Made by a program: the position numbers and the translations under genes
Shown here: piece by piece, positions 40,701 to 46,700 of the stretch
Position numbering within the stretch: position 1 is the stretch's first letter
How the letters are laid out: each line of letters begins with the position of its first letter
NCBI GenBank assembly: GCA_028023455.1
Contig: JAQFVV010000002.1
Coordinates: forward strand, 13,144,001-13,208,000
Length of the DNA: 64,000 bases
Source: Epiperipatus broadwayi
Taxonomy: Eukaryota; Animalia; Onychophora
Direction: 5' to 3'
Notes under the pieces: generated by a model
The model's database searches: none
What the model was told of the DNA's origin: nothing
What the model saw: only the letters and a program-made list of their open reading frames with translations

Positions 40701-43700
40701 TTTAATCTTTTCTTAAGTACAAAATATATTGAAATTAACTTTTATAATTACACATTCATTAAAACAAGTTTTTTTTTTTACAAAACAATGTTTTCCTATC
40801 TTTTGTTGCATTAATAATTTAGATTTATAGTATTTTTGCGCAGATCACAAATAAAATTAAAAAACTTATTAATCAAATAAACCATTTTACTTAATATTAA
40901 ATGATTTATTTTAAAATACTAGGAATAATATATTAGTTAGTTTTTTTTTTAAGATTTAAGTCATTTTAAAGTTTATTCTAATATTTATGTGTACATTTCT
41001 TCTTTTCCTTTATAAGGCCAAGTTAATGATTAATATATATATATACTAAAAATTGTGCATATCTATCAAGATACTTTCATTTCTTCCCATTTTTATATAA
41101 AAATATTTTTTGTTTAAACTTTCGTAATTTAATATTATCATAAGCTCAATTTATGGTATGGTATATATAATATTTAATATTACTTTATTGGTGGTTAAGT
41201 AATATCATCAATAAACATTTGCTTTTAGAAAAAATCCTTTAAAAGTTATGCTAATTATTCATAGATAATGTTAAAAAAAGACTTATACAAGTTGTTTTGC
41301 AAACAAAATAGTGCTGAGTGACCTATGCCATCTTTTTTTTTAAGAATAGTAAAAAATTCTCTATAATTTAATATATCCAACACACAGTTCTTCTTTTCAA
41401 AATAGTTCATATATATCTAATATAGAAATAAAACAAACTAACTCCTTCTTTTTAAAACTTGATTTATTATGACTATAATCATGAAAAAGGAATCCGACGT
41501 TTCGACTATTTTTTATAGTCTTTTTCAAGGCACACTAAAATAATATATATATACACAATAAATATCACATATTCCCAAAAAAAAAAATATTAAATTAATT
41601 AAAAATTACAAAATATAAAATATATCCATAACCAAAATTTTCTTTTTTTTACCTTATCTCACTCCCCTTACCTATTACAATCACAACTTAAACACAACTA
41701 ATTCCTTTTTAAAAATTCTATATATATATCAAATAAAAAGATAAAAGAAAATAATAGGTTTTTAATTAAAAAGTTTTTATTTGATATATATAGAATTTTT
41801 AAAAAGGAATTAGTTGTGTTTAAGTTGTGATTGTAATAGGTAAGGGGAGTGAGATAAGGTAAAAAAAAGAAAATTTTGGTTATGGATATATTTTATATTT
41901 TGTAATTTTTAATTAATTTAATTTTTTTTTTTTTTTTTGGAATATGTGATATTTATTGTGTATATATATTTTATTTTAGTGTGCCTTGAAAAAGACTATA
42001 AAAAATAGTCGAAACGTTGGATTTCTTTTTCATGATTATAGTCATAATAAATCAAGTTTTAAAAAGAAGGAGTTAGTTTGTTTTATTTCTATATAAAAAA
42101 TTCTCATTTTATTTTTAAAATGACTTTTATTTTCTAATCAATTTACTGAGTTATATATATATTGATTGGATTTAGTTGATAAGAACATTATAGGCTATAT
42201 TAACTGATAAAACAAAATATGAATGTAAATCTTATATGTAGGATAAAAAATTGAACAAAAATTGATGGGAAAAGTAATACAAGTATGATAACTACTCTTT
42301 CTTATTGCATTGCGAAATGTATACCATATAATATTAAATCATCCATGCATTTTACTACTGTTGCACAATGCTTTGCTTATCACCATCTTTTACGATTTAC
42401 AGTTTTGATTGCCCCAGCAATCTTCTTCAGAAGTTTTATATCTCCTAAAGTTAGGAGATATAAAAGTTCTGAAGAAAATTGCTGGGGCAATCGAAACTGT
42501 AAAAGAGTATGATAAATAAAGCATTGTGCAACAGTAGTAAAGTGCATGGATTATTTAATATAAATGAGGAGAGATAAAAGTTCTGAAGAAGATTTCTGGG
42601 TCAATTGAAACTGTAAACTGTAAAAGAGGGTGGTAAATAAAGCATTGAGTAACAGCAGTGAAGTGCATGGATGATTTAATATTATATGGTAATACAAGTA
42701 TGATGGTATAACTTCTTAATATTCCAAATAATGATTACATTTGTAAAAATAATCAGTTTTTGCAATATATATTAATGAATAAAAACCTAATAAACAAGTC
42801 ATTATGATATTGTGAATGAGATCAATTATGGACCACTTCAAAAATATCCATTGCTATATGGACTGGTCTCCTTTTAATTTTATATAAATTATTTTAGAGA
42901 AAGTTTTTTATATTTTCAAGATATGAAGTTAAAAATCAGGGGAAATCTTATGAATCAGGTGTAAAAAGAATGAAAGTAGGAATCTTTATATTGAGAAAAG
43001 CATCAGGCAGTTGAGAATTTGTTAACATGAGTAACATCATTAATGACAGAACAATACATTTGGAAAGAGGGCATTCCAATAAGAAATCTTCTTTAGTCTT
43101 TTCATCTCTATAACATAGACTATATATATATTTCACTTGGTGGTATTTTTTTTAAAACCATTATATATACATATATAAATGCATTTTGTAGAAGGCTTTT
43201 TTGCTATTAATTAAGAAGTTCAGATATTTAGATTCCAAATACTAGTTTATGAACTTTCTTGTGATGTACATATTGTTGAATAAAGAAAATGTTGGATGCT
43301 AATTGTGGTATAACATTGGAATATTTGCAAAGTTAATTACCTTTAAAAAAATAATGGACTTATATTAATATAATAAAGTTTTTATTTTGAAAGCAGTAGC
43401 CTCCTTGTAGTAATATAAATATTATAATGAATTTAATTAATAATTATAGACTATTTGGCCATGAACATTTGTGTTATGATACAAAATATATTGGTAGATT
43501 ATGGAGTGATTGTAAAATGGAAATAGTTTTTCTTGTTGAAAGTACATTTGAGAATCATGAAAAATATCAAGATGTAGTTAATTAAGTTTCTAAATGTATC
43601 TGCAAAAGTAATCGGACTGTTAATATGTGGTATAGAAATACTGCCCCAATGAGAAAAAATTTTTGAAAAGAAAGAAATAATTTATGTTTTCCTGAAGGTT

Positions 43701-46700
43701 TGTGATGATGGTGTTCTACCTGTATTTTTATATTGGACTATTTCCATCATCTAATATGTGTGTCGAATGTCTTTAGAAAAGTTTAATTTTTATTTAAATA
43801 TTCCAAATACATTCAACTGTTAGTAATATCACAGCAAATAGGTTAGTATATGCACCAACTATTAGTAATATCACAGCAAACAAATTAGTATATGCACAAC
43901 ATTTTGAGAGATATTTTCCTCCCCTTTTTTTCAGGTATTGCTGGCCTGACCAGTGACAGTACTAGCATGGGATTTGAACCTGGATCCTTAGATTCATGAT
44001 TATTGAATTTTAAGGTAATGCTTTAACCAACTGAGCCATCTTGCCAATTGGTTAGAGTGTTACCTTAAAATTCAATAATCAAGAATCTAAGGACCCAGGT
44101 TACCTCTCAAAACGTTCTGCATTTACTAACCTGTTTGCTGTGATATTACTAACAGTTGGTGCATGCTAAGATATTACTAACAGTTGAATGTATTTGGAAT
44201 ATTTAAATGAAAATTAAACTTTTCTAAAGACATTCAACACACATATTAGATGGTGGAAATAGCCCAATATAAAAATACAGAAGAAATAATTTGTTTGAAA
44301 GAAAGATAAAGGCAGTGGGTTGGGTTTGATCTCCAAAAATAATACTATAAAAAAAATATTATTACAATTAGAGAACTTAAATTTTTGTTGTGTAGTTAAT
44401 TATAATGTTTAGTCTCAAAGAGTGAAATTTATTAATAATGTATTAAAATCTTCTGCACAGAACAATTTGTTTAAAACTGTTTGCAATATAATATGGTGTA
44501 AAGAATGCATTCCATTTAGTTAGTAATTGATTTAGAAGTGCATAGTGTTGGAAAATGCATAGTCAAATTATTGTTGGAGATATTGGGACATTAATTTACA
44601 ATTTTTTCATGATTTGAATTTATTAAGATTATTAAACAAGTAAAAATTGGAGATGATATTATGGTATCATTTGAAGTGAAAGAATTATATGATTATGATT
44701 CAATTGATAGGAAAGAATCAATAAGAATTACTGAGAAAGTATTATTTAAAAAGATATTATACAGGAAAGTTTACAATTGATGTTTTAAAATTTATAGATA
44801 AAACATTGTCATTAGTTATAAAGGTGATTAATATAAAATGGAGCAAAAATGGCTGATGGTTCGGCTATAATTGGGTCTCAAATGTATATATATTATTAAT
44901 TTATAAGGAAGAAATTATGAATTGAAGTGGAACAGGAAAATATTATTGTATATACCAGATATATACATCATGTATTTGTATGTGGAAAAGTATCAAATAT
45001 TTGTAAATTAAATGTCAACAAATACAGAGATAGTTATATGTATATTATAATTTTTATGTTAAATTCATAGGTATATAAAAAATCTCGAATGTAGATCAAA
45101 ATACACATCATGTCATAACTAATAATAAATTGTTATATTTCATAATCATGTCAAATGGAATTGTTATCATTTATTTCTTAGATATTTATATTTTTATTCA
45201 TATTTTAGTTGGTTATGAAATTCCAAAAAACACTTATCTAGTGATGGATATATATAATCTTCATCGAGATCCAGATTATTTTCCTGAACCAGAAAAATTT
45301 GATCCTGATAGATTTTTGCCAGAAAATTCCTCTGGAAGACATCCTTTTGCATTTGTTCCTTTTTCAGCTGGACCAAGAAACTGCATTGGTAAGTTAAGAA
45401 GATTATATTAAAATTTTATCTTGAGTTTTATCATGATGATAATTTATATAAGACAAGTAAATATTTTATAGAAATTTATAAAATTAACATTTAGAATTGA
45501 TTGTGCAATATATAAAGTTCATAAAAGATGTGAAATCAAATCAATAAACAAAGAGAATAATATACTAAATAAATCGATATATTAGTGACTAGAAATTACA
45601 AGAGCCCAAAGGATCATAAAATATCAGGATGATCAATCCTAGGAAATGAAGGTCGCTAAGGTTGAACAAATTAATAGAAGTTTAGGAACACATAGAAGGG
45701 AACGTGACTGCCTCACAAGAGGTATGCCATGCAAACCAAGAAGTAAGCATATATATATATAAAGACATTTATAACAGAACTGTGAATGCTTAAATGGTGA
45801 AATAGACTTGTACAATTGGATAATCCAAGGTCAATATTTCCACTGCAACTGAAGTGGTTGCCTTGTTTCTTTCAAGCTTATGCCTCCCAAATAGTCATGA
45901 GGCACGAATAGAGGTGTTTTGAAAGTTTAACATTGCAGTTAATATGACAAAATTTTTGAATAACTAATGGAGAAATGGAAATGTATAATTGGACAATTTT
46001 TTATGAACAATAATTTAAGCATAAGAAGTTGAGTTTATGTGTGTGAGTCTGGAAGGGCAGGTGAATTTTGTGTCACTGCACATCTAGAACCATATGTTTA
46101 TACTTGAATGTTTAAAAATCATATGCACTGAATCAATTGTATGGGTGTGGATGCGCTTGACATGCACCATCACTCCCTAAATTTGTTTGTAACAATTCTT
46201 GTTGATTGCATTGTAATATCCAAACTTATGCCTCTCGAATTGTTTTGAGGCACAAATAAAGGCATTTGAAAGTAAACAAAGAGAATAATAAAACTGCATA
46301 ATTTATATAAAAATTGATAGCATCTTAATTAATAAGCAAAATTTTTAAATATTTTTTTTTAAAAATAACAAAAGACAAATGACTTTTTTCAATTAATGTT
46401 TTTATACTGATTTCATTAGAATCATCAAATCATTAGATAAAGTCTTAAAAAATTGAGGGGAAATGGCATAATTTTTTATTTAAGCCTTTTTTTTTTTTTT
46501 TGGTGTTTGATCATTTTAATTCACTTTTGAATTTTAAAATCATTATTAAAATTCTAGCTTATAAAGTTATATCATAAACATTGATTTTCAAAATTTAGAA
46601 ATAAAAGTTAATTTTGAAGATAAATCAATATATATATATATTAAAAAATCTTAAGTTATACCTACAAAGTTGTTTGCCTGTGTATGCTTCATAATTAATA

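Follow-up and report, generated by a model that had tools for sequence, protein, structure and literature searches.

Does the short, self-complementary sequence at positions 43684-44280 of the 64,000-nucleotide stretch of the Epiperipatus broadwayi genome analysed here (contig JAQFVV010000002.1, positions 13,144,001 to 13,208,000; hereafter the window) belong to a new kind of mobile element, or is it a fragment of a familiar one? An earlier note, made from the letters of the sequence, had described a tRNA-like head and body duplicated head-to-head, and had proposed a short interspersed nuclear element (SINE)-like parasite of Penelope-like element (PLE) machinery, in which an RNA polymerase III (Pol III) promoter takes the place of ribozyme processing. 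We find that the supposed SINE is the pseudo-long terminal repeat (pLTR) of an autonomous, endonuclease-containing (EN+) PLE. The locus itself is very probably the broken remnant of an old insertion, derived from the tail end of this abundant element, and it is ordinary because its sequence is not a separate tRNA-headed SINE.

An autonomous element that contains the whole sequence

The source 5.6-Gb assembly was searched with the sequence, and 30 loci were read out of 4,517 first-look candidates. Upstream of the tRNA-like block in which the arms of the window locus begin, several of these loci remain conserved for more than 600 bp, and the conserved stretch reads as a GIY-YIG endonuclease domain (IYEIPCECGRTYIGET...) that ends about 40 nt before the block. 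Upstream walking led to locus L067, where two truncated copies, one inverted and one direct, accompany a full unit. This unit measures 2847 bp, and tandem arrays with a spacing of exactly 2847 bp are found at other places as well. The open reading frame (ORF) of L067 is intact, encodes 817 aa and starts inside the 3' end of the supposed SINE, the last 66 nt of the unit (ATGATGGAAATAGTCC...AAAAACA) encoding its first 22 residues. Because the ORF begins inside the terminal sequence, its first part contains both 3' termini of the family, the short one at +31 and the long one at +66. Unit coordinates refer throughout to this single natural copy; a consensus was made for the 357-nt terminal stretch only, which is non-coding except for the relic of the ORF start. 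When body and tail of the window element are compared with the pLTR, the whole sequence is accounted for as pLTR plus ORF start, and what had been taken for a parasite of PLE machinery is the PLE's own pLTR, contiguous with the ORF for the reverse transcriptase (RT) and GIY-YIG domains and including its first 22 codons.

The 817-aa ORF is matched by the Pfam family RVT_1 at 1e-14, and its nearest Atlas clusters are annotated HTH_animal/DUF8422/RVT_1, with or without GIY-YIG. A word search retrieved 572 protein relatives (36-49% identity across 95-98% of the length), whose sources are beetles, a termite, a coral, echinoderms, a fish and the lizard Anolis carolinensis; the best relatives are from arthropods and are less than 50% identical, and the A. 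carolinensis protein is 36% identical. Full-length homologues, this Anolis protein among them, show the architecture RVT_1/DUF8422/HTH_animal. The protein carries the GIY-YIG motif CIYEIPCECGRTYIGETSRPIQKRLQEH and the pattern YIG..R..R..EH, and in an alignment of eight sequences the endonuclease residues Y704, C710, Y714, G716, T718, R720, R725, E728 and H729 are invariant. The Pfam GIY-YIG model gives no direct match on the 817-aa protein, and a PDB sequence search with the C-terminus returned chance matches only; the C-terminal 128 aa align (E = 1e-22) to P0082, in a stretch that scores above the Pfam cut-off for GIY-YIG. An RT in a single ORF, a fused GIY-YIG domain and pLTRs derived from tandem copies can thus all be read from the sequence, and it is on these predicted features, rather than on an RT phylogeny, that the element is classed as a PLE.

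Many ORF copies are 99-100% identical, and the family is large and young. The number of 42-nt repeats in the pLTR varies by subfamily, from about one in many places, judging by marker spacing, to two in the subfamily of the window copy and about 3.6 in young ORF-bearing copies (L067 reference unit 2583-2649, compared with older copies).

Anatomy of the insertion in the window

The inverted arms at 43720-44033 and 44045-44280 are 89-95% complementary, and the single-stranded region folds into a near-perfect hairpin (z = -34.8 relative to shuffles) that leaves about 36 nt unpaired at one end. The whole is bracketed by a 12-bp target-site duplication (TSD), an exact direct repeat of AAGAAATAATTT at 43672-43683 and 44281-44292, with one extra nucleotide, base 43684, separating the left TSD from the end of the element at 43685. 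The head-to-head duplication, the unpaired one-sided tail, the 12-bp TSD and the lack of poly(A) at the window element, all reported by the earlier note, are therefore confirmed.

The main arm (43685-44044, minus strand, 360 nt) is a 5'-truncated PLE copy corresponding to unit 2418-2847 of the 2847-bp reference. The 3' untranslated region (UTR)/pLTR and the beginning of the following ORF make up this arm, which has the long terminus ...CTTCAGGAAAACA at its end and is 94.4% identical to the 357-nt terminal-region consensus. The ORF-start relic occupies 43685-43750 on the minus strand, with ATGATGG at 43744-43750 and then the first 22 codons, and the pLTR body includes two tandem copies of the 42-nt repeat (43814-43897, minus strand). 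The AC-rich tail of 35 nt (43685-43719, minus strand, unit 2813-2847) belongs to the main arm only and spans the interval that separates the family's two alternative 3' termini: read on the minus strand, the main arm ends ...AAAAATACAG-GTAGAACACCATCATCACAAACCTTCAGGAAAACA, and the partner arm stops at ...AAAAATACAG. The inverted partner (44045-44280, plus strand) covers unit 2432-2812 and ends at the short terminus without the tail; it lacks 63 nt (unit 2489-2551) and has one 42-nt repeat unit fewer.

The tRNA-derived block lies at 43962-44044 on the minus strand (unit 2418-2500), with the A box TGGCTCAGTTGG at 44027-44038, the B box GGTTCAAATCC at 43970-43980 and, between them on the same strand, the extended hairpin CCTTA..TAAGG. 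These parts of the earlier description stand. Its status as a head does not, the arms being 5'-truncated at unit 2418 and 2432, and the block is not a foldable tRNA. We conclude that the window copy gives the impression of a tRNA head only because these two points are where its cDNAs happened to end.

A minimal hammerhead motif in the pLTR

The earlier note had also seen no hammerhead ribozyme. In the reference unit, a motif at 2531-2580, 110 nt downstream of where the tRNA-like block begins, reads CAACAC-CUGAAGA-A-GAGGGG(AGAAAAAUA)CCUCUC-GAAA-CG-U-U/GUGC. The minimal hammerhead of metazoan PLEs is characterized by CUGANGA and GAAA cores, one extra nucleotide after A9, a G10.1-C11.1 pair, palindromic 15.2-16.2, U16.1 and a non-G at position 17 (PMC4209133), and the reference-unit motif carries every one of these features. 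A descriptor written from them gave one match in the unit and 18 matches in 327 kb of PLE loci, with none in each of 20 shuffles. The matches represent 12 distinct motifs, from this family and from relatives on metagenome contigs, all within PLE loci, and in the 11 loci in which positions were compared the distance from the ORF match to the motif downstream of it is 92-475 nt. All 12 distinct motifs have the G10.1-C11.1 pair and the extra nucleotide after A9, and 10 have the CG palindrome, with GC, TA or CATG in the others; helices I and II show covarying pairs among the motifs. We conclude that the family has a predicted Penelope-type minimal hammerhead in its pLTR, which runs counter to the proposal of a Pol III promoter in place of ribozyme processing.

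In the window the motif has decayed (43894-43940, minus strand, as judged against the motifs of the family and its relatives). The full arm reads CUGAAAA..AAGGGG..UCUCUC-AAAA-UG, with the changes G8>A, G10.1>A and G12>A and with the CG palindrome turned into TG, and in the partner arm the 63-nt deletion removes the core. The hammerhead escaped the earlier note because its core is mutated on one arm and deleted on the other. The Rfam hammerhead models find nothing at the sequence of this family; since they are likewise silent at two putative hammerhead loci near 55.4 kb and 62.3 kb of the window, their silence is uninformative for minimal PLE hammerheads.

The closest relative found, at L072:48-3009 on metagenome contig Ga0314760_1002512, is 49% identical. 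Its span is about 560 nt longer than the 800 matched residues need and has a hammerhead motif inside it; the extra length suggests an intron, or a permuted or tandem contig.

Position of the block in the element

A rival reading, that of the earlier note, holds that the sequence is a non-autonomous, tRNA-headed SINE, transcribed by Pol III from its A and B boxes and mobilised in trans by PLE proteins, its promoter replacing ribozyme processing. Whether the block is such a discrete head was examined with genome-wide counts of exact 21-mer markers. These counts are about 2,000 for a mid-ORF marker, about 4,200 in the endonuclease region, 9,439 for a marker spanning the ORF stop (unit 2382-2402), 3,406 at unit 2399-2419, 9,831 at unit 2408-2428, 10,297 at the A box (unit 2425-2445), 5,864 inside the block (unit 2465-2485), 20,432 after the B box and 32,612 just before the short terminus; the tail marker, at 13,778, reaches 42% of the short-terminus marker. 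That terminal-region markers are 8-16 times commoner than mid-ORF markers could speak for a SINE, but the overall rise toward the 3' end is ordinary 5' truncation. Across the 5' boundary of the block the copy number shows no step (9,439, 9,831 and 10,297), and because the ORF-stop and A-box markers are about equally frequent, the block is internal and not a head. On contig C1, 13 of 25 exact A-box copies show the exact upstream marker, a proportion that fits most or all of them running on beyond the block.

A discrete RNA 5' end, suggested by the threefold step from 3,406 to 10,297, was dropped as a candidate after the markers at unit 2382-2402 and 2408-2428 had been counted. The count of 3,406 is low because of a polymorphic patch at unit 2402-2407 (CTACAT), just past the ORF stop, where the sequence is far more variable than its surroundings (CAT, CTG, CAG, CTT, CCT and others). 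Single 21-mers scatter 2-3-fold and are therefore unfit for mapping fine structure. The doubling of counts from the A-box marker to the marker after the B box may hint at a cDNA stop, yet it lies within this scatter.

The 5' ends of the first sample (30 loci) also favour a SINE at first sight, as 18 of the 30 main copies begin at unit 2415-2450 and 12 of 18 partner arms at unit 2405-2485. This sample is, however, probably biased toward short inverted pairs, because the first look ranks candidates by shared words and these are doubled in short head-to-head pairs, and the pile-up is probably a product of that search bias. In a tree of 30 terminal regions, star-like and weakly supported, short and ORF-linked copies are interspersed, with 9 label changes as compared with 9.7 after shuffling. 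The family's A and B boxes are perfectly canonical though the rest of the tRNA fold has been lost, as in SINE heads, and about 29 nt upstream of the block there is a TATA-like string; on the other side, Pol III would tend to terminate at a run of four T residues (AACTTTTCT, unit ~2751) that lies upstream of the two putative start sites of reverse transcription, the supposed SINE unit holds the start of the autonomous ORF and abuts its stop codon, and the family has a hammerhead motif of its own. Taken together, these data make a PLE-mobilised SINE quite improbable.

Insertion geometry and proposed origin

The reported signature of PLE insertion is an inverted, 5'-truncated copy with a 30-40-bp tail on one side (PMC8557442). 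In vitro, a PLE protein cuts and extends both target strands, and reverse transcription starts at two adjacent internal sites whose spacing equals the tail (PMC11167929). The geometry of the family matches both the published signature and the two-start-site finding, which upholds the Penelope-type geometry that the earlier note had recognised at this one locus and extends it to the family. Among the 30 loci, the window included, TSDs of 12-15 bp bracket 16 complexes of a direct copy and an inverted partner, and two alternative 3' ends, 35 nt apart inside the ORF start, are used family-wide. The head-to-head junction varies in position from locus to locus, and the substitution loads of the arms are equal (3.7% and 4.3%). 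In a second sample, for which an ORF probe was used, the long terminus is found in 12 copies and the short one in 13, the 5' ends span unit 1-1328, and many copies have long inverted partners. Of the 25 locally resolved pairs, scored for inverted duplication with a tail, 23 have one tailed and one tailless arm. The exact-match lists of contig C1 offer an unbiased look at the arms: the 73 exact-match arms form head-to-head pairs in 12 cases, a direct pair in one and a tail-to-tail pair in none, and six pairs have a single tailed arm, whereas none has two.

These regularities bear on two further explanations. One is that the locus results from two independent adjacent insertions, or from a repair or replication palindrome unrelated to the integration of the element. 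Fold-back repair can indeed yield inverted duplications, and the abundance of the family permits occasional neighbouring insertions; nevertheless, one 12-bp TSD brackets the whole pair, as TSDs of 12-15 bp do at 15 other loci, contig C1 has head-to-head and no tail-to-tail pairs, the tail is confined to one arm in nearly all resolved pairs, and the arms are of equal age. Such an origin is very improbable. The least probable of the readings that we weighed is a DNA transposon bounded by long terminal inverted repeats, either a miniature inverted-repeat transposable element (MITE) or a foldback element. Such an element would show a TSD, long inverted arms and a hairpin in the single strand, but here the arms are unequal, the junction differs in every locus, the TSD length varies between 12 and 15 bp, the outer ends correspond to two defined termini of a retroelement, and the sequence belongs to an element that encodes an RT.

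It is highly probable that the locus originated from a canonical EN+ PLE in one old head-to-head integration, in which copying was confined to the final ~430 nt of the 2847-bp unit. By analogy with the published biochemistry of the Anolis element, the event would have proceeded as follows. The RT/GIY-YIG protein would cut the two target strands 12 bp apart, and each 3'-OH would prime reverse transcription at one of two adjacent internal sites on the element RNA, the arm using the distal site acquiring the tail and the other arm using the proximal site. The cDNAs would have stopped near unit 2418 and 2432 and their ends would have been joined head-to-head. Decay since then has left the window copy with about 5% substitutions, 63 nt fewer in one arm and no intact hammerhead core.

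Some observations weigh against this account. The integration mechanism is borrowed from an Anolis element that is only 36% identical; several solo copies are without a clear TSD; the 5'-end pile-up at unit 2415-2450 could mean a short template RNA that starts at the block; and the scatter of the markers leaves room for a modest excess of 5' ends inside the block (10,297 to 20,432).

Two candidate features of the partner arm were rejected. Hypermutation of the inverted arm, suggested by low BLAST identity, is out, as the loads are equal and the difference comes from indels located within the 42-nt repeats. The idea that the partner arm was made by snap-back synthesis is out as well, the junctions being asymmetric in long pairs.

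Nature of the tRNA-derived block

The block lies between the ORF stop and the hammerhead, internal to the pLTR, and occurs in both old and young subfamilies, with the A and B boxes intact and the cloverleaf lost. The family A box TGGCTCAGTTGG and B box GGTTCGAATCC are about 47 nt apart, the spacing expected of a Pol III promoter. ARAGORN finds no tRNA at the block, and a young copy reaches only 15.8 bits with the Rfam tRNA model, whose threshold is 29; acceptor stem and T stem are absent, and the block folds no better than shuffles. Most simply, the block is a captured tRNA or SINE fragment. RNase P-type processing of the block, or stops at tRNA modifications in it, was rejected, as it has no acceptor or T stem and its fold does not surpass that of shuffles.

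Relatives of the family were sampled from metagenome contigs. A match to the 17-nt D-arm is found in none of 80 relatives' loci, a sense-strand pair of A and B boxes downstream of the ORF in none of the 80, and A and B boxes beside the hammerhead in none of 11 relatives examined. The block is the one oddity of the family, absent from the sampled relatives.

The sole A and B box pair among the relatives' loci, at L086:2009-2085 (plus strand), is a well-formed tRNA- or SINE-like sequence, GCTCAGTTGGTAGAGC ... GGTTCAAATCC, located upstream of a truncated PLE ORF match and unrelated to the block in the window PLE. At L071:2812-2900 (metagenome contig JGI1357J11328_10009043; a distant PLE relative, 39% identical), an A-box-like TAGTTCAATCGG and a B-box-like GGTTCAACTCT are sited between the ORF end and the hammerhead. 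Rfam and ARAGORN give no tRNA support for this look-alike, which could be a second, independent tRNA-like capture or could be due to chance.

The block might also be functional, either as a Pol III promoter or TFIIIC site that gives rise to short RNAs containing the element's RT entry site, or as a preferred cDNA stop or junction. We regard function as rather unlikely; were the block functional, the PLE would make its own SINE-like offshoots, which would explain part of the excess of short copies.

Genomic context and significance

An open frame at 45130-45411 (plus strand) contains a P450 heme-binding motif and resembles a CYP4 exon; the PLE fragment probably lies in an intron, about 850 bp upstream of this exon. 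Elsewhere in the window there is a tandem repeat at 42453-42682 (121 bp, two copies, 83% matching) and a near-perfect hairpin of 84 nt at 59750-59833. Several models of microRNA precursors match both strands of the hairpin with E ~1e-6, far below gathering scores, and the hairpin probably represents a small inverted-repeat element and not a microRNA.

By itself the window locus has little significance, being a decayed fragment of a known class of retrotransposon. The footprints of the family agree with the in-vitro lizard model of two start sites and synthesis on both strands, and provide natural-history support for it. A tRNA-derived block near a hammerhead is a testable lead on how PLE RNA is produced and processed, and truncated PLE ends of this kind risk mis-annotation as tRNA-derived SINEs.

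Comparison with known systems

With L1 twin priming and with the tRNA-derived SINEs mobilised by long interspersed nuclear elements (LINEs), the locus has in common that reverse transcription is target-primed, that a TSD and inverted segments are present, and that a block derived from a tRNA resembles a promoter. However, L1 twin priming joins different parts of one RNA, the inverted segment coming from a more 5' part, whereas the arms in the window cover the same part (unit 2418-2847 and 2432-2812). Unlike the LINE-mobilised SINEs, the window element is without poly(A) or a LINE-type tail and its partner enzyme is that of a PLE. A SINE is, moreover, a non-coding unit that, apart from a common 3' end, is distinct from its autonomous partner, and the unit here is the partner's own 3' UTR with the start of its ORF.

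The animal non-LTR retrozymes share with this family non-coding hammerhead sequences related to PLE pLTRs (bioRxiv 10.64898/2026.07.22.740005). Retrozymes are tandem hammerhead units without an ORF, whereas at the window locus two arms are paired in inverted orientation with a single, decayed hammerhead, and the tandem units of the family carry the ORF.

SMalpha repeats carry Pol III boxes. These repeats of Schistosoma mansoni are, like the short copies studied here, short, abundant and non-coding, with a hammerhead and SINE-like features, and they likewise occur in a genome in which PLE pLTRs carry related hammerheads (Ferbeyre et al. 1998, as cited in PMC8490949 and PMC4209133). SMalpha is described as a separate short element; the short copies of the present family, by contrast, are truncation products of the autonomous element and lack a discrete head.

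The closest match is with the EN+ PLEs of the Penelope/Poseidon type, such as Penelope of D. virilis and PAc of Anolis carolinensis (PMC8557442, PMC11167929). Shared features are a single ORF with an RT plus a GIY-YIG domain at the C-terminus, pLTRs that arise from partial tandems and contain a minimal hammerhead, strong 5' truncation, an inverted truncated partner, a tail of 30-40 bp at one end, and 3' ends that fall within the ORF start, in an AC-rich stretch. The termini of PAc are reported at about +111-118, and those of the window family lie at +31 and +66 of the ORF. What sets this family apart within the comparison is the tRNA-derived block with intact A and B boxes, a feature absent from the sampled relatives.

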